Source of the DNA: Mantamonas sphyraenae STR306 | Taxonomy: Eukaryota; Protista; CRuMs | Length of the DNA: 64,000 nt | Direction of reading: 5' to 3' | Assembly (NCBI GenBank): GCA_026936335.1 | Contig: JAPMXV010000037.1 | Coordinates: 231,503 to 295,502 of the forward strand | Part shown: positions 3,787 to 64,000 of the stretch, one piece after another | How positions within the stretch are numbered: the first letter of the stretch is position 1 | Layout: each line of letters begins with the position of its first letter | Program-made: the position numbers and the translations under genes | Notes under the pieces: model-generated | Told to the model about the DNA's origin: nothing | Database searches by the model: none | The model's input: the letters and a program-made list of their open reading frames with translations, nothing else

Positions 3787-3852
3787 GTCTTGTGTGTGTG
3801 TGTGTGTGCGTGTGTATGCGTGTGTGGTGTAAAGAGATTGTGTTTGTTCCCA

Positions 3853-4951
3853 TCACGCATGTCCTGTCTTGCTTTGCGTGTCAAGAGGCACCTCTTGCTT
3901 CTGATTGACCTCCACCACGGTTTGCGTGAGCTCGCGGCGTCGTGGCGACGCGGACGACGACCGGGAACACGTTTCGTGGATGCCCAGGTAGTTCAGATGG
4001 TCCTCCACCTCGTGCGGGGCAAAGAACTGATCCGAGCAGTAGGGATCCTCTCCAGAGCCATCACACACCACATAATCACCCGTTTGGTTGTTGTAAAAGA
4101 TTTCTGTGGGTGTGTGTTGGTAGCCAAGGTACTTGGGAGGCAGGTGCGGCACCGGATCCTTCCAGCGCACCACACGCTGCACCTGGTTCAGATTTTCTCC
4201 CACCGTGTCGTTCCAGTACAATGCCATGTCCTGGTTCCCTGGTCTGTGTATGTGTGTGTGTGTGTGAGAGAGAGCGTACATGGTGTCAGGGGGTGCGTTT
4301 GTGCTAAATCCCGTCCTCGCGTGTACACACCCGCATCAGCAAGTCTCCCACGTACCGAGGCTGGCCAAAGGTGATGTACGACCCGGGCATGGAGACGATG
4401 TGCTGCTCGTGCAAGTCGAGGACGGCAAACCAGAGGAGAGCTGCGCCAAGGGAGTGGCCGGTGAAGACGGCTTCGTTGCAGGTGGGGCAGGCCTCGTTGA
4501 CCACCTCCTGCCATGCCTCACGTGTGGCATTGGCCAACCGTTGGTAGGAACCGTACCAGCCGGCGTGGACACGGCATGTGTCGGCACACATGGGATAGGA
4601 CACCTGTTTGGAGTCGATGTCCAGGTTGGCAATCCAGTTGCGCAGGTCGCTCTCCACCGTGCCCCGGAAGGCAAGGATGGCCCGGTTGTGGTCCGGTTGG
4701 TATCCAACAAACCCGTACGTGTCTGCCACCGGGTCGTGCAGGATGCGAGTCACCACTGTGCGTGGGGTGTCTTGGCACCACGGCTCGCACTCCCACGGCT
4801 GCAGCGCGTCCGGATCGCAGTACGTTGCGTATGCGTACATCAGAAACTGTTGTGCCATGTCTTTGTTCCACTCCACTGCTTCCACACCCGGCGGACTGCC
4901 ACACAGCACCAGGAGGAGCAGCGCAACGAGAAAAGGGGCGGCGCGCTTCAT
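3853..4951 (-). CDS. Secreted class-3 (fungal-type) triacylglycerol lipase; intron 4244-4355
   Basis: Signal peptide, YAYATYC, AFRGT, VHAGW, GHSLGAA nucleophile elbow, TFGQPR, DPVPHLPP, CDGSGEDP, DHLNY (catalytic His). Confidence 0.92.
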
Positions 4952-5030
4952 GGAGGAGGTTTTTTTTGCTCACTTGACGCGCCGTCGCTGGTAAAGAAAA
5001 GGCCCCAAAGCATCCCAAACACATCTCGTC

Positions 5031-6019
5031 ATGACGCACGGAAGCTTGCTGCGTGACGACACGGTGTCGTTGGTGTGTATGCTTGTTGTGGCCATGGTGT
5101 GTGGGTGTGCAGTGGCACAGGGCGAGCCGTTGAGAGAGGGACAACCATCCACGCTGGTGCTTCCGGCAGTGCCCCACGTCTCCAGAGCAGACATGGCACC
5201 CGAGGTCGAGTGGGATTACGATTATGCCAAACAGACGTTGGTGTACGCATACGCAGCGTACTGCAATGGGACCAGTTTGCAGCAATGGGACTGCAAGTGG
5301 TGCAAGGAGCTGCCGCAAACCACCGTCACCCAGTATTTCTACGTCGATGCCATTGCTGGGTTTGTGGCCTACAGTGGTGACACGGCCCTGCTTGTGTACA
5401 AGGGCACCACGTTCACCAACATCAAGGAATGGATCGAAAACTTCCAAATCAACAAGCTGACGCCGTACAAGGATGATCCCAAGGCCAAGGTGCACGCAGG
5501 ATGGTACAAGGCGTACCAATTTGGCGGCGTGGGCAACGTGACACGCACCGCATTGCAACAGCTGTTCTCTCAACATTGTCCTCAGTGCCGGAAGCTGTTG
5601 GTCACCGGACACTCTCTGGGTGCCTCCATGGCCACCCTGGCTGCCATTGACCTTGTGGAACGTGACTTGTTGCCCGTTCCCGTCGATTTCCTCACCTTTG
5701 GATCGCCTCGTGTCGGCAACCGCGAGTTTGTGGAGCTGTGGTTGCAGCGCCTTGCTGGACGTCTGCTGCGCCTGCAGCGTGTGGTCAACCAGCACGACGC
5801 CGTGGCACACCTGCCCAGTGACTGGCAGCACACCGGTTGGTGTCATCTGCCCACTCAGGTGTGGCACAAAACACCCACCCCGCGCGAGGACTATGTCATT
5901 TGCGACGGTGGGCCCGCCCCAGCGGCAGCGAAGACCCCGCATGCTCCAACAACCAGCTGGACCTTAGTGTCCACGATCATTTGGACTACTTTGGCCTTCC
6001 TGAGAGCTGCTCGTCGTGA
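5031..6019 (+). CDS. Second secreted class-3 lipase; needs +1 nt near 5910-5921 to reach its C-terminus
   Basis: YAYAAYC, YKGT, VHAGW, TGHSLGAS, TFGSPRVGN, DAVAHLP. The C-terminus SGSEDPACS...HDHLDYFG lies in another frame (ORF 5837-6019) and matches the neighbouring paralogue. Confidence 0.88.
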
Positions 6020-6131
6020 GAGGAATGGTGAGAGAGCGCGAAATGAAAGCCAAGACAACTACGGGGCAAAGACGGAGTGAAGCTGTCGTTCCTTGCCACT
6101 TCAAAGTCTCTCTTTCACCCGTTGTTGTGCC

Positions 6132-8862
6132 ATGGCCCGCCCTTCCATTTTGGTCATTGCAGTGGTGGCCATGTGCGTGCTGGCCCTGTCCATCAACTTT
6201 CTGTACGTGGAACGCCAGGCGACCACCCCTGCGCCGGCGACCGAGGGCGAGATGCAACACGACGCTCCGCCCGCCACAGGCGACCCCTTTGCAGAGGACG
6301 GCAAGCAAGATATGAATGCACCCAACGAGGAGGGTGACGCAGACGACGACAACGAAGAGGACGAGGAGGTGGTGACAACGCCCACGCCAACACCCACTGC
6401 AACACCCACTGCAACACCCACCACAACACCCACTGCAACACCCAGCGCATCACCGAGCCCAACGGCACAACCCACGACGCCTGCGGACAAGGGGTACTTT
6501 GCTGATCTTGGGCCGTGGTCGGACACCACGTACCAAGACCCGGACCCGTTCAATGTGAACCTGGACGACATTGTGGTGATGATGACGACGGGCAAGAAGC
6601 TGCATGGGACGCGAGCCAAGACGACGGAGCAGACGTGGGCCCAGTACGCACCCAACTTTCTCTTTTTCTCCTCCGGAGGGCCCGATGAGCATGTGAAGCG
6701 CGTGTACGCCGTGCCAGGCACGGGAGACACGTGGAAGGATGCAAATTACAGGTTCATGAAGTCGCAGGAGCTCATGCGACGCAAATTCCCCACGAAAAAG
6801 TGGTTCCTGGTTGGCGACGACGACACCTACATCTCTCTGCCCCACCTCCTGCGCTACCTGCGCCTCGTGGACAGCAACAGTAAGTTTGGGACGAGGGAAG
6901 AGGACGGGTTCCACCGCATCTGCGTGATGATGGATGTGCAATGGTTCCTGAGCGTGTGCACGGGTGCCCATCGTTGGCAGGTGAGCGCAAGACAGAAACG
7001 CTGACGTCGCATTTTTCGCAGAGCCGTACGCCATGGGCTTCATGCGCTACTCACAGGGGTTCCAGTACGGCGGAGGGGGCACATTCATGACAGGAGCAGC
7101 ACTGGACGCCACGCGATCGACGATGCTGACCAAATGTGTGAGCTACGACCAGAACTACGACATGAAGATGAGCCGGTGCCTGCGGGAGGCCGGAGTGACG
7201 ATGTTGCACATTGACGACAGCCACAGCATGCCGCCTGTGGACGCATGTGCCTCCAAGATGGGCGCTGGTGTGGGACAGCATCCAGTGAGCTTCCACTACA
7301 TCAAGGATGCAGCGAGTATGGAGTACCTGAGCGACGTGTTCACAGTCGTACCCATGCTCACCATGATGCAGGAGGAAGAGCGGCGTGGTGGCCAGCTTCC
7401 TGCCAATCGTGAGGAATGGGAACCCAGAGCCAACACATACGTGCATCCGCAGCAACCGGCGCGGGTGAACCCACGCTCGCTTCGCAAGCTGACACTGGAG
7501 ACTGTGTATCGGCCACACTGGAGCAAGTGGTATGTGTTGGCCGGTCCCGATGAGGCGCCGTCGTCCATCCCCAACCACTATGGCAATTGGGAGTCGTCGC
7601 CAGGCGTCAAACAGTACCAGGCAACCCTGCCTGATCAGGCACAGAATCCGTTTGTTGGGTGGAAGCCTGCGTTTGTGAAAACACCCGAGGACTATGTGGA
7701 GAGGCCAGAAAAGGTGGGGTTGCTTGGAGTGCCTCCTGTGCTGCATGGCATCGGGTCGGTGGATCCCCACACGCACAGCGGCAGCCGGCGACGACTGCTG
7801 ATGACAGCAGACAAGAAGGACCCGAAGAGCGAGGATGAGGGAACCGCAGCAGGCACAGTGACAAAGGTGGAGGGTCCCACGCCGGCACCGACGGCTGCAC
7901 CGACGCCACCCAAGGAAGAGGCGAGGAACAGGGTGATGTTTGTTGTGCGTGTGAGCGAAGCCAGCAACGACGACACAGACACGCCCAACATCCGACTGTC
8001 GAGCACGTACGAGACATGGATGCGCGAGTGCACGTCTGCAGCAGGATACGACGGGGTGTGGGTGGTGGGCAGCCACGAGCGACAAGACGCAGTCAAGGAA
8101 CACATGGAGCATGTGTCGACGGTGGTGGTACATGACACCTACGATGAGTTGCAAAAGCCCAAGGGCGAGGCCACTGTGCGTGTGCCTCTGGTAATGCGTA
8201 CGATCCAGACGCTGATGAAAAAGCACGGCGACTACGACTGGTATGCCCTGATGCCCGATGACACACTGGTGACCTGCCCACGCATGCTGGACACCCTCAA
8301 CAAAGACCCTGACTGGGTGCATGCACACACGTCGCCCGTCATCATGGGCACCAACGGCATGGTGGACGGCTGGCCTGCGCTGCGGCGTGTGCTGAACGCA
8401 GACGGCCCGCTGTTGCTCAGCAACGAGCTGATGACACGCTTGAACGCATTGGATCTGGAAAACATGCGCGACGAGGGTGTCAACGGCTTCCAAAGGCTGA
8501 GCAGCGAGGACACGCACGACCTGCAGCGTGTGGACGATGTGGAACACGTCAACTTCCACCGTGCGGTTCTCAAGGCCGGAGGCGAGACGACACGCATCCT
8601 CATGGACGATCTGATGTATGCACAGGCGCCGGAGGACTACTGCACCATGCCGGATCTCATCACACGCACAGGCGGTTACATTCACACCATCCACGCCTGG
8701 GCCAACGCACACTTGCATCCGGAACGCCAGCGGGTGCTCGCACGCGGACGCAAGTGTGTGTGGGAGCTGGATCCCAGCGAGCATTGGCAGTGTGCGGCAA
8801 AGGAGATGGGGGTCGCCGATCGCCATGTGCAAGGATGGAAGTGGGCAACCATCACCTCGTGA
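6132..8862 (+). CDS. Type II membrane glycosyltransferase with two GT31 (Fringe/core-1 galactosyltransferase-like) domains; intron 6880-7021
   Basis: N-terminal TM and Thr/Pro stem. Domain 1: TW..., KWFLVGDDDTY, GGGG, PVSFH. Domain 2: ETW..., YDWYALMPDDTLV. Intron GTAAGT..GCTGAC..CAG joins the ORFs in frame. Confidence 0.8.
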
Positions 8863-8961
8863 GAACAGACATGACACTTACCCAAACCCTAACAGTGCAC
8901 TGCAAGCGTCCATTGTGCACTCCATCTACCTTTCATTTCCAACCGCAATGAGAGAGAGTGA

Positions 8962-9981
8962 TCACTCCGCCTGTTTTCGTCCATTCAATCCCAGCGCTTG
9001 CCAGACAATGAACCGCGCGTACCCATCACGGATTGCGTTGATGTCTGAACCACCCTCTAACAAGGTGAGCATGGTCTCCACGTGGTCTCCATGAGCTGCA
9101 GCCACCAGAGCTGTCCAGCCGTTGTCGCACTCGGCCGTCACATCCGCATGTCCCACCTGCATCAACACATCCACCGCCTTTGTTTGTCCAAACCATGCAG
9201 CAATCATCAACGCATCCCATCCGTGATCCTTCACCGCGTTCACATTCGCCCCGCCCTTGATCAGCGCCAACACAGCCTCCCAGTGTCCCTCCTGTGCGGC
9301 ATACATCAACGCCGTGTGGCCACCGTCTAATGCCGCCTCTGTATCTGCGCCCGCTTCAATCAGCACCTGGATGCAGTCGACATGGCCGGTCTGGGCAGCC
9401 CCCAACAACGCGGTGGCACCCCGTCCCGTGGTGCGTTTCTGCGTGTTTGGGTCCGCACCATAGTCCAGCAACAACTTCACCGTACGTACGTGTCCATTCT
9501 GAGCTGCCAGAAACACGGGTATGCTGTCCCCATCCGTCCACGACGGTTGTGCGCCGCCGTCCCGCAGCAGCACCTCCACCACCGCTGTCCACCCCTGCTC
9601 GCACGCTGTCAGCAGTCCCGTGCGCATTCCTTCGCTTGCCCCACCCTGCACCAACACTTCCACCGTCTTCAAATGGCCCTCCTGTGCCGCCAGCTGGAGG
9701 GCCGAGGCACCGTCGGCTCGTGTGCGATTCACGCTTGCCCCGTGATCCAACAGAAGCTCCACACACTTTTCGTGTCCCATGGCTGCACTGTTGATCAACG
9801 CAGTCACCTTTCCCGGTCCCTCGGCGTCCACATCGACACCTGCGTCGAGCAACACCTGCACAACCTCGGTGTGTCCTTGCTGAGCGCCCAGCATGAGCCC
9901 ATACTCCTTGTCTTCCTTCCCACTGTTGGTCAACAACGACTTGACCGCCCTCCAGTTCCCATGGTAGGCAGCAAGATCCAT
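8962..9981 (-). CDS. Ankyrin-repeat protein (~9 repeats)
   Basis: Repeated G.TAL..AA..GH...V..LL..GA.V motifs. The 3' end may include an intron (GTACGC near 9020). Confidence 0.88.
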   Translation of the reverse strand: MDLAAYHGNWRAVKSLLTNSGKEDKEYGLMLGAQQGHTEVVQVLLDAGVDVDAEGPGKVTALINSAAMGHEKCVELLLDHGASVNRTRADGASALQLAAQEGHLKTVEVLVQGGASEGMRTGLLTACEQGWTAVVEVLLRDGGAQPSWTDGDSIPVFLAAQNGHVRTVKLLLDYGADPNTQKRTTGRGATALLGAAQTGHVDCIQVLIEAGADTEAALDGGHTALMYAAQEGHWEAVLALIKGGANVNAVKDHGWDALMIAAWFGQTKAVDVLMQVGHADVTAECDNGWTALVAAAHGDHVETMLTLLEGGSDINAIRDGYARFIVWQALGLNGRKQAE

Positions 9982-10084
9982 GCTGCTATGTGGTGTGTGG
10001 TGTGTGGTGTGTTGTCTGCGCGAGTGCACACACAAGAGCACTGCCCACAGCACAGACAGCACGTTCATTACACACACACACAGA

Positions 10085-10563
10085 ATGTCGTTTGTGGGTC
10101 CTACGGTCAAGGCTCAGGTGTACAGGCGGACCTTTGCACGAGGGCTGGGCTACTTTGCCATCGGCCTGCCCTTCTTCTACTACTACACGCAGACAGAGGA
10201 AGAGGTGCAGCAACAGCTCAAGGTTCGTTGGTTGGTGGGCACAGAGGATGAATTTGCAAAGGTGCACATGAACGGATGGGGCCCAACCAACCCCCTTCTC
10301 TCCCCACCACGTGTGGATCATTCGTTCGGCGAGTTTTCCCCCACGCTTGCACTGACACACACACTCACTCACACACACGCTCGACGTCTCACCGCCTACA
10401 GGAGGCAAGCAAGAATACCATGCAGTATGAGAGGACACGGATGAACAACCAGCTGTTCCTGGACAAAATCCGCAGCGAGAGCGTGTTTGACTCGAGCGGC
10501 AAGACCGAGTCGGAGGTGGCAGAGGAGGCACAGAGGAGGCACACGGAGGAAGCAGGAAAATGA
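10085..10563 (+). CDS. Small (~99 aa) single-TM protein, possibly a mitochondrial inner-membrane assembly factor; intron 10223-10401
   Basis: MSFVGPTVKAQVYRRTFARGLGYFAIGLPFFYYYTQTEEEVQQQLK|EASKNTMQYERTRMNNQLFLDKIR...; intron GTTCGT..ACTGAC..CAG is in frame. The function is inference only. Confidence 0.6.
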
Positions 10564-10725
10564 AGGCCATCTCTCTCTCTCTCTCACACTCTCTTTCATT
10601 CCTCCCATTTCTCATGATGATGGTTCGTGCACTCTGCAGCTGTGCGTTTCCCGCTGCGGGTTCCCGTCCGCTTTCGGAGGCAGCGCAACACAGTCACACA
10701 CACACACACACACACACACGTGGGA

Positions 10726-12525
10726 ATGCTGGAGACATACAAGGATGCAGTGAATTACCTGTGGTCCACGGTGTCGTTTGCCAAAATCAGCAAGGAGGAG
10801 TACGAGTCACGTGAGGCGAATCGGCTGTACCGCTTCCTGCGCAAGGCGGACGTGTTGCCGCTGGACAACGCCTCGCAACTGCGAGTGATCCACGTGGCTG
10901 GCACCAACGGCAAGGGGTCGACGGCAGCCATGAGTGCAGCGGCATTGCAGGCGTTGGGTTACAAGGTGGGCCTGTTTACGTCGCCCCACCTGCACAGCGT
11001 TCGGGAACGGTGCCGCATCGACGGCGCCCTGATGACCCGTCAGGAATTTGTGGAGCGGATGAACGAGGTCAAGACGCTGATTGAACGCATCACCGACATT
11101 GAACTGACGGTGTTTGACAGGCTGACCATGCTTGCGTTGCTGCACTTTACGCACCACCAGGTGGATTGGGCGGTGATGGAGGTGGGGATGGGTGGACGAC
11201 TGGATTCCACCAACTGCATGCCCGACCATTGGATCCAAGCCAGTGTGATCAACAGCCTGAGTTTGGAGCATACCAATGTGTTGGGCAACACCATCCAGGA
11301 CATCGCATGGGCCAAGGGAGGCATCATACGCCCTGCCGTCCCTGTCTTTACCATCCAACAGCCCTCCCACGACGCCCATGTCGTCCTTGCCGACATTGCA
11401 CAGGACAAGCAGACCACGTTGCATGTCAGCACACCCGTGGGATTGGACACAGATGCCATGCTGGCTGTGCTGCAGGGCAAAGAGGTGTCTTCAGGTGAGA
11501 ACAGCAGCAGCAGTACTACCACCACCACCACCAGCATGCAGAGTGAGGAGGATGACTATCAGGATGTGAACCGTGGCCTTGTGTTGAGTGTGTTTGCACA
11601 TCTGTTGCAAAAGGGCATTGTGGAGGATGCGTCGCAGGGCCAGGCGGTGGTCAAGGCGTTGCAGGAGGTGCGTTGGTTTGCACGCATGGAGGCACTCACG
11701 GGTGCCCCGGTGCCCGTGTACATCGACTGTGCACACAACTTGGGTGCTTTTCGCACCTTTGTGCACACGTTGGCCAACACCCTGGCCGCAGAGGTGGAGC
11801 ACAACCACAACGCGGATGTCAGCACCACAGGCACCACTGGCACCATCACCAGTGCTCCCGTCTTTGTGGTCGGTTGCAACAGGGACAAGGAGGTGCAACC
11901 CATGATCCAACTCCTGCTGGAGTATCCTCTCGTCGCTGCGCTTGTGTTTGTCAATAGCTCCCATCCCAAGGCACTCATGCCTGCCGAGATGGTCGAGCGC
12001 TTCAACACAGAATCGGCCTCCGAGGATGACGATGCCCCTTTGCTTGTGCCTGTGCCACAGGAACAGTCTGAGGAGGAGGGTGCCACCGAGCAGCCTTCGG
12101 CGTATGTGTACCGCGACGTGCATGTGTATCTGTGTGACCAACGTACGGAGGCTGTGCAAAAAGCGTTGGCACTGGCTGCCGACCACACGCACCAGGCACA
12201 AAGCCAAGAGGATGGCACGCAAGAGACGAACGACGAGGGCAACGACGATGATGAGGGCAGCATCAGCAACAGCAGCAACAGCAGCAGCAGCAATAGCACC
12301 CAAGGGGTCGTGGTGGGTGTGGGATCTGTGTTTCTGGCTGCCGATCTGCGTGAGGAGTGGTGTGTGTTGTACCCGGATTCATTCCCTGCTTCGGATTGGG
12401 TTCACGAGGCAGCCAAGGAACCCACCTTTGAGTGGACATCCTCCTCCTCCTCCACCACCAGCTCCTCCTCCACCTCGTCCGACGAATCGAGCAGCTCGGC
12501 ATCCTCCTCCTCCTCCTCGGCATAG
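10726..12525 (+). CDS. folC: Folylpolyglutamate synthase / dihydrofolate synthase (FolC family)
   Basis: IHVAGTNGKGST P-loop, GLFTSPHL..VRER, EVGMGGRLDSTN, EHTNVLG, IAWAKGGI, DCAHN, GSVFL. Confidence 0.93.
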   Translation: MLETYKDAVNYLWSTVSFAKISKEEYESREANRLYRFLRKADVLPLDNASQLRVIHVAGTNGKGSTAAMSAAALQALGYKVGLFTSPHLHSVRERCRIDGALMTRQEFVERMNEVKTLIERITDIELTVFDRLTMLALLHFTHHQVDWAVMEVGMGGRLDSTNCMPDHWIQASVINSLSLEHTNVLGNTIQDIAWAKGGIIRPAVPVFTIQQPSHDAHVVLADIAQDKQTTLHVSTPVGLDTDAMLAVLQGKEVSSGENSSSSTTTTTTSMQSEEDDYQDVNRGLVLSVFAHLLQKGIVEDASQGQAVVKALQEVRWFARMEALTGAPVPVYIDCAHNLGAFRTFVHTLANTLAAEVEHNHNADVSTTGTTGTITSAPVFVVGCNRDKEVQPMIQLLLEYPLVAALVFVNSSHPKALMPAEMVERFNTESASEDDDAPLLVPVPQEQSEEEGATEQPSAYVYRDVHVYLCDQRTEAVQKALALAADHTHQAQSQEDGTQETNDEGNDDDEGSISNSSNSSSSNSTQGVVVGVGSVFLAADLREEWCVLYPDSFPASDWVHEAAKEPTFEWTSSSSSTTSSSSTSSDESSSSASSSSSSA

Positions 12526-13615
12526 AAGTACAAGCTTTACCTTGGCAATGTCCTTGTTGACACACTCTGGCTGCTTGCTGTAGTACTGCCAGTAGCGATG
12601 GTTCTCTTTGACACGCAGGCGCTTGATAAAGGCCATGCCATTGTCGTCCTCCTCCCACAGCGCAGGCTGTTCGTTCACCTCGTCCAGGTACTCCACCAGA
12701 TCCTTCCAGCCTGCACTTTGCAATCGAAATGTGTTTTCCACCTCTGGCGACCACTGCTTGGCACGCACCATCTTGATTGGCTTGCGTTGTGTCTGCTTAC
12801 CCTTGCCATTGACCTTGACCTTGCCCTTGCCCTTGCCCTTGCCCACGGTCGATCCCAACCCTGCCGTTCGTCCCACCACCTCTTTGCCCTTGCCCTTGTC
12901 CCGTGTCTCCATGCTCTTGCTCCCTCCTCCCATGCCCGAGACACCACTCGTCACCTTGCCCTTGCCCTTGTCCATACCCTTGGTGTTGATGCTGCTGCTA
13001 CCACCACCACACCACCACTACACCGTGGCTGTAGTTGGATGCGTTGTATGTGGATGATGTCGATGTGCTCCCTGTTTGCTTGTGACCACTGCTGCTGCTG
13101 CTGCTGCCACTGCTGCCTTCCTGCGTGTTGTTTGCTCGATGCAGCGCGTTTTCCCGGTCGCTGCTGCGAGACACCCGTCCCGACGGCCGTGTCGATGTAC
13201 TGCTGCCTGTCGATGTGTTCCCCAGTGTCTTTGATTCATTCGTCTGTGGGTCTGTCGTGTCCATGGGCATGCTTGTGGCTCCCTTGTGGCTGTCCAACGA
13301 CGGAAACCTGGCCGAGCCCGTGGACCGTTTCTCCCCGCGCGCGTTTGTCTTTGCACCCGTCCCTGCCTTGCCTGTGCCACTGCCCTCTGTACCTCGTTTG
13401 GTCAACCCACTGCCTATGCTCACCCCTTCCTTCCTCCGCGTCGTCGTCGTCCCACTCGTCGTTTTACTCCGTGTCTGGCCATACCCGGAACTGGAGATGT
13501 TCCGCTTCTTCGTCGTCGTCGTCCCACCCGACTTTTTGCCTGCCTTACGGGCCCCAGCCCCAGCACCAGCACCACCGCCACCGCCACTCTTTTCCTTCTT
13601 GGAATGCAGTGTCAT
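12402..13615 (-). CDS. MEIG1: MEIG1-like protein, probably with a long low-complexity Lys/Gly/Ser N-extension (frame breaks at ~13010 and ~12534)
   Basis: Core KPIKMVRAKQWSPEVENTFRLQSAGWKDLVEY...FIKRLRVK...YYSKQPECVNKDIAKVKL resembles MEIG1 (W..E.EN..R.Q.AG..D..EY...YY.K..EC..K...KVK). Both termini are uncertain. Confidence 0.78.
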
Positions 13616-13751
13616 GGGCGTGGATGACACGCTGAGTCCGAGATCCATGCCGCCTGTGATGCGAAGATGTTGTTGATGCGTGGGCGCAGCCAGAGCCTGC
13701 CAGCCCTCAAACAGCACCACGTCGTCGGATCTACCACAGCAGCAGAGGCAC

Positions 13752-15505
13752 ATGACCACACCGGTGGTGGGAGGCATGCAGCGTGTGATTCCCCATGCCT
13801 GGATGTTTGCACGGCAGCAGGGCAGTCGCAGCAGCAGCAGGGCAGCAGCCACCACGCAGGAGGGCCTCTTCATCGCCCTCGGCTCACGTAGGGGCTTCCA
13901 CGTGCACAGGGCAGTCCACAGGCACGACTTGGACGCAAACAATGATGATGGTGATGGTGATGCAAAGGGCATGCGGGGCCGTCAGGAGATGGACTTTGTG
14001 GAGCAGGAGCTGCAGAGGGAGATGGAGGAGGAACGCCTCTCCAAGCGCTTGGGTCTGTTTTCCGGTGCTGCCATGATTCCACACCCGGCCAAGCGCGAAC
14101 GAGGTGGCGAGGACGCATACTTTGTGGATGACAAGTGGGTTTGGAGGGTGTGGAGACGTGGGGTTGGGCGTGTGGGGGGAGAAAAACGGGAGAGTGTGTG
14201 TGGGAAATGGGAAACGGGAGATTGTGAGCTGACACACACGCGCCCTTTTTCACGGTCCACAACGTCACCTGGGCGCAGGGACAACATTGTGGGAGTGGCA
14301 GATGGTGTGGGTGGCTGGGCGGAGCAGGGGATTGATGCAGGCGAGTATTCGCGAGCTCTGATGAAGGTGGGTGGGGGAGGGTTGGATGGCTCCGTGGCGC
14401 CGGTAGTCCGGGTACCTGGAACTGACTCCCTGCTGAAACGACGGCGGACTGTGTGGATGTGTGTGTACGTGATGGTGGGCATGGGTTGTTTGTGAACACA
14501 CGTGTGGGTGCAATTGTGGACGATGGGGCACCGCAGTACTGCGAGCAATACGCGCAGGAGTACGTGGAGAACACACGCATTGGCCTGCGTGTCGAAAGCT
14601 ACCGACGACAAAGCGAAGGCGACGACAACAACGCCATGGGCGAAGTCATGGCCAAGTACAACACCGCAGACAACACAGCCGTGTTTGTGCCACCACTCAA
14701 GGTGCTCAACGACGCCTACATGAAGGTGACCTTTGAAAACGTACGTGGAGTGTGTGATGCTGTGTGAGAGAGAGATCCAACACACACACACACACACGAG
14801 ACTCACTCACCCCCACACACACATTCCCTGGGGTTGTCTGGCCACAGATTCTGGGTTCGACAACGGCGTGTGTGGTGTCGTTGGATGCAAAGGAGCACCG
14901 TTTGGAGGTGCAGAATGTGGGCGATAGTGGCACGCTTGTGATCCGTGACGAACGGGTGATTCTGACCACAGAGCCACAACAGCACCGGTTCAACCAACCA
15001 TACCAGCTGGGCGGAAGCGATACCCCTTCCTGTGCCGACAAGTACGAGTTGGCTGTGCGTGCAGGAGACGTCATTGTCACCGCCACAGACGGTCTCTTTG
15101 ATTCTCTCTACGTCCCAGAAGTGCTGGAGATTGTGCGCGAGTGGTAAGTGTGAACGTGACCATGGGATGGACGGGGCATGGGGTGACGGAAGGGGGCGGA
15201 TGAACGATTGACGGACCCTGGGTGATGCTCACACTCTCCCTCTCCCTCTCAACAGCATCAAGACGGCAGAGGCATCCGGGGAGGAGTTTGACCCCAGTCT
15301 GTTGGCTCAGCGACTTGCCTATGAAGCTCATGAGCTGGCACGGGATCCCAGCCGCTACAACGAGACGCGCATCTCCCCATTTGAGCTGCAGTGTGCTCAG
15401 TCCACAGAGCTCATCTACTTCAAGGGCGGTAAGATGGACGACATCACAGTGGTCGTCTCCATGGTGGTCGCCAAAGACCCTGCAGAGGAGTCTTTGGTCG
15501 TGTAG
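13752..15505 (+). CDS. PTC7: PTC7-type protein phosphatase 2C with a likely mitochondrial presequence; 4 introns
   Basis: IPHPAK..GGEDAYF, GVADGVGGW, GSTTACV, NVGDSG, QQHRFNQPYQL, ATDGLFD, GGKMDDITV. Exons are joined by GT-AG introns. Confidence 0.9.
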
Positions 15506-33886: not shown

Positions 33887-34229
33887 AGAAGAGGGCAATG
33901 AAACGGAGAATTTTGATTGAGGAGAAAATCCAGGAGTGGGCGTGAGATCGTGAATTTAAGTCTGAATCAAAATTTAAAGATCGGTATGTAGGTGGAAGCA
34001 TGTACGGGGCCCAGGGAAGAGGTGGGTGCAGCATGCCGGGGGAAGTGGATTCAGGGAGGAATTGGGCGGATTAGGGAGTGTGACGGGGATTGTGTTGTGT
34101 GGCAGCGGAATGGAGGACTTTTCGGCGGGAACGGAGAAAAGGAAAGGGGTCAGAACGAGAATTCGAAGCACTTCGACGACAACCTCGAACTCGCGCCGGC
34201 CAAGGCATACTAACAGCAAACTTTGCAAC

Positions 34230-37200
34230 ATGTAGGTGGCGGGATGTGATGTTGGGGGTCCCGCTCAACAGTGTGGATAGGATGAGAGGTGCATGGGTGC
34301 AGTGCAGCAGCGCTGCAGAGTCTGGATAGCGCGGCGGAAAGTGCCCGTTTTTTTTTCTGAGGGATGCGCAATTTTGTTGCGAACACTTTCCTGAGCTGAC
34401 ACACGGGACGGGGTGTTGCACAGGGCAAACGAGAAGCAACAGGCAGCAGCCTGGGTTGTGGCATTGGCCATGGTGCTTGTGTGTGTGCTCCCTGCATGCG
34501 CAGAGAGCACAGAGATGAGCGTGAGCGAGGCGCAATTGGCGCGGGAGGGAAAAGAGGAAATCATCCAAGTGCCGGAGACGGTGACGGATGAGGAGTTTTT
34601 CGACTTGGCCACCTACGAGCGTGGGCCGGCGACGACGGAGATTGAGGATCGTGATCTTCAGCCTCTGTACGGCCTGCTGGCGGCGCAGGGGGTCAAGACG
34701 AACCAGGCGGAAGTTCGCACGTTTGTGAAGGGCCCCGTGGTGGTGCATGAGCAGTATATGTCTGTGGCACCGGAGTACCACTCGCACCTGAACATGGTTG
34801 CCGAACCCGTGAACGAGCTGGACAACAACAAGGCGCTGAAGCAGATCCGCAAGCAGGCGCATGCAATCGGCCGCCAAGTGGCGCGCTCGCAGAAGCAGGA
34901 GGGGTCTGACTCGGTGGAGGACGTGGACAGCGACGAAGAGGACGTTGCCGACCGCCTGGAGCAGCTGCTGACGGACTACGACGAGTCGACGGTAGTGCAG
35001 CACGTCCAGAACATGGAGGAGCTGGCCAAGCAGGGCCTGATCTTTGCGGGCGACCGCAAGGATGGTGTCTTTACGGCCACATGCGAGTTTATGAAGGCCC
35101 ACTCTGCCAAGATGGCAGTTGGGGCCACGTTCTCGCTGCCTTCGGGTTTGTACAAGGTGACCGGCATCCACGCCCCCAGCGGAGCCAGCGCCTGGACGCA
35201 AGGAAGCTCGCTGACGTGCGACATCAACTCGTTGCCGTACCATATCACGTGCCGCAACGCGGAGCTGGAAGACGTGGTCAAGGATGCCACCGTGCACTCT
35301 GAGATCCGACAGGTGCAGGGCGAGGTGCGCAACGCAGAGACGAACGAGCGCGTGCCGACGCGTCCGCAGGAAGTGCAGGAAGAGGATTTGAAGCTGGCCA
35401 AGGCCATGCAGGAGGATCTTCGCCAGGACCGTGTGGCCAGCACGTACGATGATCAGGTGGAGAGTCTGCTGAAGGATCTGGGCGACCACGTGTGGCGCAT
35501 TGCCAGCAAGTCGGGAACCTGGGTGCGTGGAAGCAATCACAAGGATGTGATTGAAGCCACCAAGGAGCTGCGTGCCAACGTGCAGAAGGAGGCACGCAAG
35601 CTGTTTGATTCGCAGAAGGAGGCAGTGATCCAGGAGGTGATTGCCCGCCACGACAAGTTTACCGCTGCCGACTCTTCTTCCGACCAGAAGGATGGTGAGG
35701 ACGATGAGGTTTCCGATGTGAACCGAGACTTTTGGCGTGTGTTCCGCAGGATCGGCGATGCTTTCCGACGTGCGGCCAGGGCTTTTGCGGCCGCGTTGAG
35801 GGCCATCAAGGCCGCAGCCACGCGCACGTGGAACCGCCTCAAGAACACGGTGGTGTCTGTGGTGCGTACGGTGCGCCGTGCGGCAGCAGCGGCATGGAAC
35901 ACGGTCAAGTCCGTCACGAGGCATCTGACGCACGAGTTTGCCAAGTTTGGCCAAGCGGTGGCAAACCATGTGAACAACTTTGCCAACAAGGTTGCACAGG
36001 TGGTGCGCCACGTGGGTGCTGCGATGAAGCAGGTGATGCACAAGGTGGCCACGTTTGTGAAGCGTGCGGTGGACGAGATCGGCAAGGTGGTGAAGAAGAT
36101 GATTGAGATTGTCAAGTTTATCATCCAGGCGATGATGGGCAACATCGACGTGTACGTGGAAAAGGCGTATGGGTTTTCGTTTGTGAAGCACAACATGGAC
36201 CTGATCAACACGCACGAGGACAAGTACATGGATGCGCTGACGAAGAAGCTGAAGGAGCTGAGGAACAAGAAGAAGGGCAAGCCGGCCAACAACAAGAAGA
36301 AGGGCGGCGGAAGCAGCAGCAACGTGAAGCTGAACGGCCTTGTGCGTGCTACGGAGTTGGAAGCTTCGATCCAGCCCAAGTTTATCTTTGCGTTGAAGAT
36401 CAAGAAGTGGCTGCTTCGCCACCTGAAGATGGAGATGGTGGGCCGCATCCGCGTGGCAGCTGCGCTGTTGGTGCAGGTGTCGATGGAGTGGTCTGTGTCC
36501 AAGGACAAGATGCCGTACGACAGGCGCGTGGCGCGCAAGGCGTTTACCATTGGCCCCGTGCCGGTGTGGATCGACATCCACGGCCAGGTGGTTGTGGGAG
36601 CGTCCATGACAGTCCGTGCAGGCATCCAGTTCAAGTTGGGTGGTTCGTTGGGCGTGCACTGGCGCATTGGTGCACACGTGACGAGCCCGAACGGCTTCAA
36701 GTTCAACTTCAAGTTTATCCACCACTTTAGCACGGAGCGCAAGTTCATCAAGCCCAACGGCTTCCGTCCCTGCGCCTCTGTGGAGATTGAGGTGTTTGTG
36801 CGCCCGCAGATTGCGGTGAAGATCTACAGCGCGGCCGGCCCGACGTTCTCGCTGGAGCCGTACATGAAGCTTGTGTTTGTGCCCGCGGGTGCAACCGAGT
36901 GCATTGTGCCGCTGCAGACGCACGAGAAGCTGGCCAAGACGGAGGCGCCGATGTCTGCCGTGAACAAGAAGAACAAGCTGTCGTTCTACCTGGGCTTCCG
37001 CATCAACGTGGGCGTGCAGGTGAAGATTTTCGGCAAGGAGCTTGTGTCGCACACGTTCCCTGTGTACGAGGCACCCGAGAAGCTGCTGTTTTCGTTTGAG
37101 ATCCCGCTGCCGGCCAACCTGCGCAAGGCACTGAACATGAAGAACGCCCAGGTGGCCGAGTACGACGAAGAGGGGGAGGACAAGACGACGAGCGAGGAGG

Positions 37201-39836
37201 CGATGGAGGAGCTGACCAAGACGCTGACATCGCTGGCTTCGAGGAAGCAGAGCGTGGCAGCACGCCCTGTGGAGGAGATGTCGACACAGGAGCTTGCTGC
37301 TCTGCCTGCGGAGCGCGACCCGAGCCGCTTCTACCCGCAGTGGTCGATGGGCGTGGTGTCGATGGAGGAGCGCAACGTGGAGGACCGTGTCAACGCGGAC
37401 GAAGCCGAGGCGATGGACATCGACAGCCGCGCGAAGCGCATTGCGCAGGAGGCGTTTGGCATTGTGCGTGCGCCTGAGGAGGAGGAAGATGAGGAGAAGG
37501 AAGACAACGAGTCGGACAGCGAGGTGGAGGAGGAGGACGAGGCGCTGGAAGCATCGGAAAGCGAGCAGCTGGAGGGCAGCGAGGTGGAGGACGTTGAGAC
37601 GCAGCAGTTTTCGGAGGAGGTCAAGCAGGTGATGAGCACGTACAATGCGTTCCGTCACAACCTGGACTGGAACACATTCCAGCTGGACAAGTACCAGGGC
37701 CAGTTCCGTCACGGACGCCACCTGTTCATCCAGTACCGTGAGGCGGCGCTTGCGCAACAGCGCCACGTGGGACACTGGACGCACCTGTGGCACTCGTCGA
37801 AGCATGCATGGCAGCACCATGAGAACATTGTGAGGCATCTGACGCACGAACGAAACAAGTTTGTGCGTGCGCTGAACCACCACCGACACTGGTTCCACGT
37901 GCACCAGCGCATCATTCCGCACCTGAAGCACCAGCGCAACCATTGGGCACACCTTGCGCGTGTGCACAACAACGCACACTTCAGGCACTTGGCGCACAGG
38001 TTTCAACACGAGCTGAACCGTCGTGTTCACCTGATGAACCACGACCGACACTGGATGCACGTGTGGCAGCATCGCGTCAATCACGTTCTTGCACGCCTTC
38101 GCCAACACACGCACCTGCGCAAGGTGTTCTGGGACAGGTTCCATCACTACCGGCACCTCGTGAACCACTTCCGCCACATGAACCACTACTGGCGTGTGAC
38201 ATGGCCACCCCGCGCACGTCATCTGCGTGCGCAGATCCACCGCTTCCAGCACGGCGTGCATGTGTTTGCCGCCAACTGGAACGACCACACGGTGGTTCAT
38301 CGGGAGCACGCAAAGCGCCATCACCTCTTGCGTTTGGCGGCTGCACTTCGGCCGCAGCTTGTTGTGCCGACAAGGCACTTGCACCACTGGCAGCACCTTG
38401 TGAACGAGGCACAGCGTCACTTTGCGCACTGGAACCACCAGTGGCATCACTGGAACCATCAGTGGCACACCTGGAACCACAAGCAGCACGTGATTCACCG
38501 CAAGCACGAAGTACCGGAGTGGCACGCATGGAGGCACAACCTGCACATGCGAGACATCATGCACAGGGCGATCCATCACCACGGTCACTTTTTCCGTGTC
38601 AATGGTCTCGGTGAGCTGTTCCCTGAGCTGCAGCGCCGCTTCCACCTGTACAACCACCGCTACCACCACCATCTGCGACAGTGGCACCACTGGCGTCACC
38701 AGCGCCACCTTGCGTTCCGCCATCGCGACCACGCGGGACACATGCGACACCGTGCGACTGGGCCCCGTGACCACTGGGCCCGCATGCGCGCAGTACGCCT
38801 GCCGCACCTGCACCACTGGCAGCGTGTGGTGAACCACCTGAACCACCGCATCCACCACGCGTTGCACCTGGCACACCTTGCGCTGCTGAAGATCCAGTGG
38901 ATGCACGCACGCATGCGCAAGTGGGCTGCCAACCCTGCTATCGGGCGTGAGTGGCACCACGTGCTGCATCACCTGCGCCTGGCTCGCTTCCACCTGTACC
39001 GCATGCAGGAAGCAAACAACCAGCACGAGGTGAACAAGGCACATCACGCAGTGAACCACTGGCGTCATCTCCTGGAGAAGGTGCTTGTGAAGCGCATGGG
39101 CAACCAGGAGCTGACGACGATTGTGCAGTGGACGACCCACAACTACAACCGTCAGATGGCCAAGCTGCGTGCCACAGAGGCTCGCCTGAGGGGTTACCAC
39201 CAAAAGGCGAACCACTGGATGCGCTCTGCAGAGCAGTTCTTCAACTGGATGCGCGACGCACACAGGCATCACAAGGACGGTGGAGCGGCTGCACAGCGAC
39301 GGCACATGCCGGAGTACAACCGCCGCGTGAACCTGAGCAGGCACTATAACCGTCTGATGCAAGCGCAGACGGGTGCGCTTCGCAGCGAACGCGACCACCT
39401 GACGTACCTGTCGCATCGTCTGCAGTACCTGAACGGCGGTTCGCACCTTGTGCTGCGTGAGCACGAACAGCGCAAGATCACGGAGCAGATCAAGCAGCTT
39501 CTGGCCACGCCTGCGGTGCGTCAGCTGCGCCATGCAGCACGTGAGGCACTGCGCACGCGTGCCACGGCCATGCGCAACCTGATCCGTGTGGCGTCGCTGA
39601 GCCGAGGTGTGCCTCGTGAGGCGCGCCACGCCATGACCCAGAGCATCCGTGACGCACTGGTCAAGACGCGTTCGGTGTTGGACCGTGATTGGGAAGTGAA
39701 CCAAAAGATCGTTGGCTGGGCCAAGCAGGCAGCGTTGGATGCCCGACGCTGGCTGAGCAACACCCCGTCGCCGCACGTGCGTGCTGACGAGGAGCGTCGT
39801 GCACAGGCTCATGCCGACAAGATTCACCGTGGATGA
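34230..39836 (+). CDS. Large secreted protein (~1804 aa) with a cationic amphipathic segment, beta-rich domain, acidic linker and ~600-aa His/Arg/Trp-rich C-terminal region; intron 34232-34423 splits the ATG
   Basis: 5.4-kb open frame with strong codon bias; signal-like AAAWVVALAMVLVCVLPACAES; AT|GTAGGT..GCTGAC..CAG|G reconstitutes an in-frame start codon. Confidence 0.85.
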
Positions 39837-39944
39837 ACGCAGTCCCAGTAGTTTGCTTGGGAACCAAAAGAGCGAATGAAGAAGCATTGTGAATCATCGT
39901 GGCGCCGTGGGAGACAAAGGGAAAGGGAATTCGAAGCGAACGAC

Positions 39945-41430
39945 ATGAGGACAGGGAGCGTTGTTTTGATGGCGCTGTTGACGCTGGCAGTGTGCACGTC
40001 AGCATTGTTTACGCAGCGGCCGCATGTGGGCGCGAAGGACATGGAAGGGCAGACGGCGCAGTGGTTTACGCAGACGCTGGACCACTTTGAGTCGTCGGAC
40101 ACGCGGACGTTCCAGCAGAAGTACTACGTGAACAGCACGTGGTTCAAGGCGGGAGGACCGATTGTGCTGTACATCAGTGGAGAAGGTAAGGGTTGAGCAA
40201 AGAGGGGCGGGGGCGGGGGGAGAGGCGGCGGAATCCACGCGAGCTGACGTGAGGGCACACACAGGACCGTGCTCGGGAATCCACCCGAACGACTTTACAC
40301 TGGAGATGGCGGAGGCACTGTCGGGGATGGTGGTGACGCTGGAGCATCGGTTCTACGGTGCGTCGCAGCCGTTTTCGACGCTGACGACGGCCAACCTGAA
40401 GTACCTGACGTCGAGCCAGGCGCTGGCAGACTGGAATGCGTTCCGGAACCATCTGGCAAGCGAGAACCCTGGCAGCAAGTTTGTGATTGTGGGCGGATCG
40501 TACTCGGGGGCACTGTCTGCGTTCTTTCGGGAAAAGTACCCGGACGCAGTGGAGGGAGCGGTGAGCAGCTCGGGAGTGGTGCATGCCATCCTGGACTTTT
40601 ACGAGTTTGACGAGCAAGTGGCCAAGAGCGCAGGGCCGACGTGCACACTGGCACTGCAGAACATCACAGGGTACATTGAGAGTCAACTGGCAGGAGGGGC
40701 AGAGGCAAACGCAGCGGTGAAGAGTGTGTTTGGTGCGGAGGAGCTGCTGGACGGGGACTTTCTGTACATGATGGCAGACACGGCTGCAGAACTGATCCAG
40801 TATGGATACTATGCCGAACTGTGCACGCCTCTGGTGGAGAGCTGGGTGCATTCGGGAACCCCGGAGGAGCTGCTGCAGCTGTTTGCCGGAATCTACAAGG
40901 ACACGTGGGAGCCGAACCTGAACCCGGGGGGCCCGCAGGAGTACAGCACCAAGTACGGCCAGCGTGTGGATACGGAGGACAGTGCAGGACGAAGCTGGTG
41001 GTGGGAAAAGTGCAACGAGTTTGCGTTCTTCCAGGTTGCGCCGAGCAGCAACAGCATCCGCTCGTCTCAGATCGATCTGGCATGGCATCGTCAGCGGTGC
41101 GAGGCACTGTTTGGACAGGGCACGTGGCCGGATGTGAACGAGACGAACCAGAAGTACGGGGCACTGGGTCTGCACAACGCAACGAATGTGGTGTTTACGC
41201 AGGGCAGTGCAGACCCATGGCAGCGTGCGGGGATCTCGACGTCGTCGCCACAGCGTGGCTTTGAGGCGCAGGTGATTGAGTGTGTCAACTGTGGCCATTG
41301 TGTGGACCTGCGCGGCTGTCCGTCGGCCGGGCCGCACACAGCAGGCGGTTGTGCTGGCAATGGGTCGCAGGAGTTGGTGGCGTGGAGAAAGGTGATTGTG
41401 GAGACGGTTGGGAAGTGGGTTGGGCAGTGA
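39945..41430 (+). CDS. Secreted/lysosomal serine peptidase, family S28; intron 40186-40264
   Basis: Signal peptide, WFTQTLDHF, TFQQKY, SGEG, LEHRFYG.S.P, QALAD, GGSYSGA (Ser), DPW (Asp), HCVDL (His). Confidence 0.93.
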
Positions 41431-63844: not shown

Positions 63845-64000
63845 GGTTAGGGTTAGGGTTAGGGTTAGGGTTAGGATTAGGGTTAGGATTAGGGTTAGGG
63901 TTAGGGTTAGGGTTAGGGTTAGGGTTAGGGTTAGGGTTAGGGTTAGGTTAGGTTAGGGTTAGGGTTAGGGTTAGGGTTAGGGTTAGGGTTAGGGTTAGGG
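63845..64000 (+). repeat. Telomeric repeat array (TTAGGG)n, right chromosome end
   Basis: About 25 TTAGGG units to the end of the window, G-rich strand running 5'->3' toward the end; variants TTAGGA, TTAGG and TTAGGGG are present. Confidence 0.97.

Follow-up and report, generated by a model that had tools for sequence, protein, structure and literature searches.

The subject of this analysis is a single large gene of Mantamonas sphyraenae STR306, a marine, surface-gliding flagellate whose cells were collected with cell scrapers. The gene lies on the plus strand in a stretch of 64,000 nucleotides (contig JAPMXV010000037.1, positions 231,503 to 295,502), referred to here as the window, and encodes a protein of 1788 residues with a long block near its C-terminus in which more than one residue in five is histidine (His). 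By its periodicity and predicted structure, this His block is a canonical coiled coil of the heptad type, about 475 residues long, with a core made of Trp, Phe, Leu, Val and Ala and with an outer face on which a stripe of His is flanked by Arg, Asn and Gln. Compared with related genes, the block appears to be the His version of a polycationic helical module that is exchangeable within a family of large secretory proteins, and we tentatively read the protein as an extracellular or granule-stored structural material, a predicted function to which we assign a probability of roughly 0.4.

The histidine-striped block

An earlier note on this DNA, made from the sequence alone, had described about 600 residues in which roughly every fifth is His, encoded by largely non-repetitive DNA and preceded by an acidic block. 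In the translated gene, His accounts for 22.1% of aa 1071-1545, next to 13.3% Arg, 9.5% Leu, 8.0% Ala, 5.9% Asn, 5.7% Gln and 5.7% Trp, and for about 3.4% of the remaining protein. Counted in bins of 50 residues, the number of His is 0-5 up to position ~37700, 9-14 from ~37713 to ~39060, and 2-6 thereafter. The frequency given in the note is thus correct, while its length holds only in part: the dense region spans some 475 residues, and only His-enriched patches extend further, to aa ~1627 (39350). The block contains 105 His, 76 Arg+Lys and 21 Asp+Glu, corresponding to a net charge of +55 with neutral His and of +160 with protonated His. Ahead of it, the expected acidic block is readily seen: every 50 residues of 37113-37712 contain 10-22 Asp+Glu, and the net charge over 37170-37679 is -34.

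With respect to repetition, Tandem Repeats Finder detected one relevant array (38427-38480, period 21, 2.6 copies, 88% matches), which coincides with the 21-nucleotide repeats that had been placed at ~38428-38480, and each repeat unit is exactly one heptad. Other DNA repeats in the block are short, dispersed and degenerate (61-84% identity), and a composition-corrected BLASTP comparison of the block with itself revealed no internal protein repeat, in agreement with the view that the region is not derived from slippage. The His residues are therefore not arranged in many short tandem copies, unlike those of the tandem-repeat His proteins HRG (GHHPH) and Plasmodium HRP-II (AHH). Usage of His codons is similar inside the block (CAC 87, CAT 18) and outside it (36 and 9).

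The spacing of His was compared with that in 2000 shuffled sequences, and p-values from Fourier analysis are given for the strongest peak in the range of 2 to 12 residues unless a single period is named. Pairs of His are enriched at i+3 (43 observed vs 23 expected, z 5.3), at i+7 (32 vs 22.7, z 2.5) and at i+14 (z 2.6), slightly so at i+4 (28 vs 23, z 1.4), and are depleted at i+2, i+5 and i+9. The power spectrum of His peaks at exactly 3.50 residues (p=0.0025), and the hydrophobic residues have the same best period, with p=0.0005 when 3.5 is taken by itself and p=0.13 when every period is allowed. In nearly every segment of 21 residues the hydrophobic moment and the His moment point 100-180 degrees apart (mostly 130-180). 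When residues were sorted into seven angular bins around the local hydrophobic centre, the three farthest from it held 69 of 93 His and the three central ones 19 of 22 Trp. Because the period is 3.50 and not 3.6, and because His lies opposite to the hydrophobic stripe, we assign the block to the canonical heptad coiled coils with an outward His stripe. The His block of a paralogue, C24, gives the same result: its period is 3.50 (His power 2.13, hydrophobic power 6.18), and none of 2000 shuffles reached either value. In designed Trp-zipper coiled coils, Trp occupies the a and d positions; the heptads of the 21-nucleotide repeat resemble them in carrying Trp at core positions, spaced 4,3,4,3, and differ in that the sequence is natural and the core is mixed with Leu, Val, Phe and Ala.

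An AlphaFold2 model of the His region, computed for 597 residues from a four-sequence alignment (A2), is about 93% helical, with individual helices of 26-125 residues. The mean predicted local distance difference test score (pLDDT) is 62 overall and reaches ~90 at aa ~1100-1235 (fragment residues 60-200). The structures nearest to the model in a Foldseek search are antiparallel coiled-coil hairpins (a chemoreceptor signalling domain, an SMC arm and colicin E3), all with E >= 0.12, and we therefore consider these matches generic. According to the model the block is probably folded into long antiparallel hairpins. Taken together with the spacing analysis, the helix with a continuous His face and the periodic His that the earlier note anticipated are both found. 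The layout of the whole protein is given in Table 1.

Table 1. Features of the His-rich gene, in positions of the window
Feature	Position	Strand	Basis or remark
Candidate split start codon	34230..34423	+	AT 34230-34231, GT..AG intron 34232-34423 (192 nt), G 34424
Coding region	34424..39836	+	intronless open reading frame; open frame from 34413; stop 39834-39836
Hydrophobic, signal-peptide-like N-terminus	34424..34502	+	translation; clear signal peptides in homologues
Conserved N-terminal domain	34563..35699	+	33% identity to P0001; paralogue matches
Weakly SpaA/prealbumin-like stretch	35106-35315 (aa 213-282)	+	match to protein of 13 SpaA repeats
First acidic spacer	35667..35729	+	translation
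First cationic amphipathic helical region, Arg/Lys/Ala/Val-rich	35730..36200	+	composition
Lys-rich linker	36243..36320	+	translation
Family-defining beta domain, very long predicted strands	36321..37136	+	17-sequence alignment A1, AlphaFold2
Second acidic block	37113..37679	+	core 37413-37562
His-striped heptad coiled-coil block	37680..39104 (aa 1071-1545)	+	composition, spacing, period
Best-modelled part of His block	37767..38174	+	two long helices, break at aa 1167-1168
21-nt tandem repeat	38427..38480	+	2.6 copies; HWNHQWH-type heptad per unit
Tail of His block, patchy His	39105..39350	+	6-18% His per 50 aa (sliding windows)
Conserved C-terminal helical segment	39417..39803	+	common to P0001 and several paralogues

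A family of giant Mantamonas proteins

Homology searches used the exon-2 open reading frame (ORF) from the ATG at 34470. A word-index protein search gave one match (E 1.7e-151), the Mantamonas plastica protein P0001, which is a complete Trinity ORF in EukProt and is collinear with the window protein (E 3e-95 or better). Its parts follow each other in the order signal peptide, N domain, acidic spacer, cationic amphipathic helix, Lys-rich linker, beta domain and acidic linker, after which come a His/Arg-rich region, a conserved C-terminal segment and two extra C-terminal repeats. The N domains of the two proteins are 33% identical over 577 residues, and the His/Arg-rich region of P0001 (aa 1141-1600) contains 17.4% His and 16.5% Arg. 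The C-terminal segments are 31% identical by BLASTP (E 2e-11), and the paralogues C48 and C32 match the same segment at query 1671-1778. The two end repeats of P0001, of ~80 residues each at aa ~1740-1897, are missing from the window gene and have no Pfam match.

We also searched exhaustively with HMMER, using aa 1-1000 as the query against 1.84 billion representatives. Strong matches came only from M. plastica, namely P0001 and P0006-P0009 (the latter four with E 9e-150 to 2e-20). Weak matches were obtained to SpaA-repeat adhesins (residues 213-282) and, through the beta domain, to three unannotated metagenomic proteins; the metagenomic match P0024 is bacterial and lipoprotein-like and has no Pfam domain. 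In the case of the adhesins, aa 213-282 matched P0010, a protein of 13 SpaA domains, in 7 stretches (E 3e-11), and Pfam SpaA (PF17802) itself was absent at E <= 1. Prealbumin-like repeats of the SpaA/Cna-B type are found in Gram-positive adhesins, and the likeness of the N domain to them is weak.

Other searches returned little. Pfam, applied to the whole protein, to the His blocks and to four paralogues, gave nothing above curated cut-offs; below threshold, Baculo_PEP_C was found in the first amphipathic helix of the window protein, and ApoLp-III and phasin in the equivalent helices of paralogues. The His block alone had no match in the word-index search, among PDB sequences or in Pfam, the beta-domain profile had none in the word-index search, and PDB sequence searches with the His block, the beta-domain profile and the N domain yielded nothing meaningful. 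Searches of the ESM Atlas by features produced no usable match. The earlier note had recognised no known family, and with strong matches confined to Mantamonas this judgement stands. Its assignment to secreted proteins agrees with the clear signal peptides that we find at the N-terminus of the M. plastica homologues and of paralogue C19.

A six-frame search of the M. sphyraenae genome revealed at least 15 further loci of the family, with open frames of 900-2800 residues and E-values down to 2e-135. Common to them are the N domain, the acidic spacer, an amphipathic helix rich in Lys, Arg, Ala and Val, and the beta domain, and in most of their composition profiles an acidic and a cationic stretch are visible beyond the beta domain. 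The nature of the tail varies. In C24 it contains 17-20% His and 15-23% Arg over ~400 residues, in C46 it consists of 41-56% Arg together with Val over ~800 residues, partly in near-perfect repeats, and in C69 a Lys/Leu module is combined with an Arg/Val module; other loci have Arg/Lys/Ala-rich tails or Cys/Gly-rich C-terminal stretches. Among the M. plastica homologues, P0006 has 9-10% His. The order of acidic and cationic parts was read in two paralogues, C46 and C69, and in both of them the acidic block passes straight into the cationic helices, through a similar entry motif. The proposal that the acidic block acts as a counter-ion or pro-piece fits this arrangement, since such a block adjoins the cationic helical tail in these paralogues as well. 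In C46 (C46:12000-21999, plus-strand ORF from 2869), near-perfect Arg/Val heptad-like units follow an acidic block of Ser, Asp and Glu.

As far as sequence comparison can tell, then, this is a Mantamonas-specific and partly subtelomeric family whose hallmarks are the N domain, the amphipathic helix and the predicted long-strand beta domain, and the tails described above are what identify the His block as one version of an apparently exchangeable polycationic helical module. A maximum-likelihood tree built on the beta domain pairs the window gene with C24 as its sister (support 92/89), and both belong to a clade of eight members (93/91) that also holds P0001, P0006, C47 and three paralogues with a Cys-rich C-terminus. 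Several paralogues (C41, C46, C47, C48 and C55) lie 10-35 kb from contig ends. The single open frames of C75 and C55 each hold two beta domains, as if the family chassis had been duplicated internally. The copies in C75 are nearly identical to those in C55 (end branches 0.008 and 0.075), and the composition profiles of C47 and C49 are likewise almost the same. The likeness within these two pairs (C75/C55 and C47/C49) suggests recent duplication between chromosome ends.

The beta domain was modelled with AlphaFold2 from a 17-sequence alignment (A1). The model (pLDDT 85) consists almost entirely of strands, of 27-47 residues each. The best Foldseek matches were pore-state MACPF proteins, perforin-2, pleurotolysin, a gasdermin-like protein and leukocidin, with E >= 2.7e-3 and template-modelling (TM) scores <= 0.27. 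The matches from VIA-align, to outer-membrane barrels and gasdermin pores, had Z scores of 7-8.4 and so stood at background level for this tool, and matches in the ESM Atlas had TM <= 0.46. Membership of the beta domain in one of the beta pore-former families (MACPF, gasdermin, leukocidin) was considered and rejected, as fold matches were found only at noise level and barrels tied with them. The model indicates that the domain may be built of long amphipathic hairpins arranged as a sheet or a barrel, in a fold that may be undescribed.

Inside the His block, conservation is of a different kind. In alignment A2, 41-49% of the window gene's His columns have His in the partner, where the background is 15-16%. 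However, when the partners were shuffled and realigned, the same or nearly the same values were obtained (His-His pairing with C24 43% real vs 45±4 shuffled, with P0001 54% real vs 46±3.4), and identity to the partners was 29-30% real vs 28±2 shuffled; we have thus withdrawn positional conservation of His as a claim. From these alignments, what is conserved in the block appears to be its composition, its heptad pattern and its architectural place, with the sequence itself seemingly diverged to the limit. Since the positions are unconserved, a specific conserved binding site is not to be expected.

Possible roles of the block

We favour a structural or adhesive role, for instance as a matrix for adhesion or gliding or as that of a secretory granule, because of the giant size of the protein, the rod-like coiled coil, the adhesin-type stretch in the N domain, the Cys/Gly-rich relatives and the strong transcription (see below). 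That the His-striped protein is a biomaterial, as the earlier note put forward, is something that we infer, and a pH- or metal-switch role of the His block is plausible. In the mechanism that we propose, the block would be the C-terminal payload of a large secretory protein and its charge would work as a switch. Inside acidic compartments of the secretory or endosomal route, protonation of its 105 His would give a rod of about +160 that could be condensed with acidic partners: the protein's own -34 block, acidic members of the family or other polyanions. Seawater, with its pH of about 8, would make the His neutral, the charge of the rod would drop to about +55, and the neutral His face would be freed for metal coordination or for contacts with a substrate.

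Two kinds of known secretory material invite comparison. The His-rich domains of mussel byssus, the polyelectrolyte proteins of sandcastle-worm cement and the Nereis jaw protein are secreted, high in His, rich in Gly and largely non-helical, and animal adhesives keep blocks of opposite charge in acidic granules and are set by the pH jump in seawater and by metal-His coordination. Secretion, a high content of His and oppositely charged blocks are shared with these adhesives, whereas there is no homology and the protein considered here is a helical protist protein known from sequence. The matrix proteins of ciliate dense-core granules and trichocysts are acidic, contain heptad repeats and charged pro-segments, and form large lineage-specific families. 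The likeness in this case extends to a large lineage-specific multigene family of abundantly expressed secretory proteins with heptads and charged pro-segments, and the difference lies in the lack of homology and in the ciliate proteins being acidic and much smaller.

Several observations weigh against a structural role. The His periodicity of the M. plastica homologue is not significant over all periods (p=0.70), and reaches p=0.028 at 3.5 alone. Starting at the ATG at 34470, the protein has a very short signal peptide. A beta domain combined with amphipathic helices would fit a membrane-directed role equally well. The paper on the M. sphyraenae genome makes no mention of extrusomes (PMC10492846), and in another article (PMC6492006) the genus is listed solely in a table of classification. 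Lastly, the transcription that we cite in favour of this role comes from a sequencing run whose type is without record, and which we have inferred to be RNA from its depth profile alone.

The chief competitor is an antibacterial effector family that this bacterivore would send into its phagosomes, which we regard as unlikely. Acidic blocks would keep the cationic modules inert in transit, the acid of the phagosome would protonate the His face, the charged rod would bind to anionic bacterial envelopes, and the beta domain and the first amphipathic helix would attack the membrane. Precursors of the defensin and cathelicidin type consist of a signal peptide, an anionic pro-piece and a short cationic segment, and here, too, an acidic segment stands directly beside a cationic amphipathic one (-34, then +55 or +160), with the difference that the cationic part comprises 475-800 residues with a coiled-coil period instead of tens of residues. 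The richness in Arg, Trp and His points in the same direction, as do the weak matches of the beta domain, which are mostly to pore-state MACPF, gasdermin, leukocidin and outer-membrane barrels, the sub-threshold likeness of the first helix to ApoLp-III and phasin in paralogues, and the fact that the family is fast-evolving, expanded and partly subtelomeric. Histatins and clavanins are natural His-rich amphipathic peptides. The designed His-rich amphipathic helical peptides of the LAH4 family are reported to interact with membranes in a pH-dependent manner (PMC8160934). Like the His block, such peptides have a polar face of His opposite a hydrophobic face, and their charge and binding switch near pH 6. 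They are, however, 20-40 residues long and fold on membranes, whereas the His block keeps its heptad phase for hundreds of residues within a protein of 1788. Indeed, a phase-coherent period of 3.50 over such a length, together with a hydrophobic core, argues for a stable rod rather than for peptides that fold on a membrane. Proteins of 1000-2800 residues with Cys/Gly-rich C-termini likewise look structural, and the fold matches of the beta domain are all at noise level (Foldseek E >= 2.7e-3, TM <= 0.27, Z <= 8.4).

The structural and the effector reading could both be accommodated if Mantamonas had evolved giant secreted proteins of acidic and basic blocks that form a class not known before, a suggestion that we regard as doubtful. 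The chassis would be made of an adhesin-like N domain, a lipid-type amphipathic helix and an oligomerising beta domain of long hairpins, and the exchangeable coiled-coil payload, differing in its chemistry from paralogue to paralogue, would be either pH-gated (His/Arg/Trp) or of fixed charge (Arg/Val, Lys/Leu). The His rod, switchable by pH and metal, would then either set an underwater adhesive or gliding matrix in seawater, or arm a prey-killing effector in the acidified phagosome.

Binding of polyanions is a further possibility, and an improbable one. Ligands of the His/Arg face would be polyphosphate, nucleic acid or sulfated glycans, met for instance in a secretory or acidocalcisome-like compartment and bound in a manner resembling that of CHAD (the alpha-helical domain with conserved histidines, PF05235), a helical, His-conserving domain that binds polyphosphate (PMC6537752). 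The His block is likewise all-helical and rich in His and Arg, with a large positive charge and a basic surface suited to polyanions, and the Arg-rich paralogues are extreme polycations. On the other hand, CHAD was not detected in the whole protein at E <= 1 or in the His blocks of the window gene, C24 and P0001 at E <= 10, there was no PDB sequence match, and no CHAD structure was present among the best 50 Foldseek matches in the PDB of the low-confidence His model (pLDDT 62). In addition, the block is a heptad coiled coil of 475 residues, about twice the length of CHAD, it lacks conserved positions, and it resides in a secretory protein.

Pairs of His at i/i+3 and i/i+4 on a helix are classical chelation sites, and the block has 43 HxxH and 28 HxxxH pairs where about 23 of each are expected. 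On one face, such pairs could chelate Zn, Cu or Ni and serve as a metal store, buffer or delivery device. We consider a primary role of this sort very unlikely, as no pattern of Cys, Asp or Glu co-ligands accompanies the His, and as the paralogues swap His for Arg or Lys in the same module, which suggests that charge, and not chelation, is the common denominator.

The His richness might also have no role and be no more than a neutral side effect of the way in which a fast-evolving linker of low complexity changes. The unconserved positions are what this would lead one to expect, C24 being equal to its shuffled controls and P0001 only marginally above them. We nevertheless give neutral drift little credence, since the block shows little repetition at the DNA level, its His codon usage is similar to that of the rest of the gene, and His keeps strictly to its heptad phase on the side away from the core. 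In addition, 17-22% His has been kept in three genes from two species despite maximal divergence of the sequence, and on this ground we argue that selection has acted on composition.

The gene, its transcript and its place in Mantamonas

The first in-frame ATG of the gene, at 34470, yields the protein of 1788 residues according to the ORF list and the translation. Reading the sequence upstream, the candidate splice that would complete a split start codon (Table 1) would give a longer and more typical signal peptide. Three public sequencing runs (X1, X2 and X3) cover the stretch. Depth in X1 and X2 is mostly flat, at ~59 and ~43, and resembles that of genomic DNA. Summed depth in X3 is 0 over 34200-34398, reaches 3175-14544 along the gene, and is down to 1703 over 39772-39970 and to 371 in the gene that follows, bearing in mind that contig depth is a poor measure of expression. 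The coverage of X3 extends over 34399-39970 and is broken into 478 short pieces. This profile makes it likely that X3 is an RNA-seq-like run in which transcripts of the His-rich gene are very abundant, and thus that the gene is highly transcribed. Contig ends bearing adaptor sequence are found at 34436 (adaptor before), 39872 (behind) and 39925 (before), and suggest a transcript of ~34436-39872. Because X3 depth is zero upstream of 34399 and because of the adaptor-bearing end at 34436, we favour the ATG at 34470 over the AT-intron-G split start, the same data pointing to an unspliced transcript that would begin downstream of the splice acceptor.

The neighbouring gene encodes an S28 serine carboxypeptidase, and the 5' end of its transcript apparently lies at ~39925, 20 nt before the Met of its signal peptide at 39945. 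The spacing between the two genes (39836-39945) is very compact, with the apparent 3' end of the first transcript at ~39872 and the 5' end of the next at ~39925.

An ORF of 1938 residues on the minus strand (34071-39887) is codon-aligned antisense to the His-rich gene, and the idea that it is the real gene, and the His-rich frame not genic, is effectively refuted, because the plus-strand frame matches the M. plastica protein at E 1.7e-151 as well as many paralogues, and because the codons TTA, CTA and TCA are wholly absent among the 1789 sense codons of that frame, at a GC content of 0.79 in third codon positions, which accounts for the antisense ORF without a second gene. With its collinearity to M. 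plastica proteins and the depth of X3 over the gene, the plus-strand frame assumed in the earlier note can be taken as real and transcribed.

The FALCON assembly of M. sphyraenae has a GC content of 59.19% and TTAGGG telomeres (PMC10492846). Repeats of TTAGGG close the window (63847-64000), which places the His-rich gene ~24-29 kb from a chromosome end and makes the window subtelomeric.

His-rich proteins, coiled coils and secretory precursors with acidic and basic parts are each of known kinds. In contrast, we found no description in the literature of a natural His-striped heptad rod of ~475 residues that serves as an exchangeable module of an orphan, genus-restricted family. If the proposed switch is true, the block would be an unusually clean pH- and metal-responsive rod, with Trp-containing core positions and about 100 titratable, outward-facing His, and the natural Arg and Lys versions of the module would provide built-in controls. 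Should the His stripe lack a specific role, what is documented would still be an orphan family in which composition is conserved and sequence is not. Mantamonas is a member of CRuMs, a deep supergroup of eukaryotes that has hardly been studied, and to our knowledge nothing is known of its adhesion, gliding or prey killing. A giant secretory family that appears to be strongly transcribed, genus-specific and partly subtelomeric would be a good candidate for a part in this biology.

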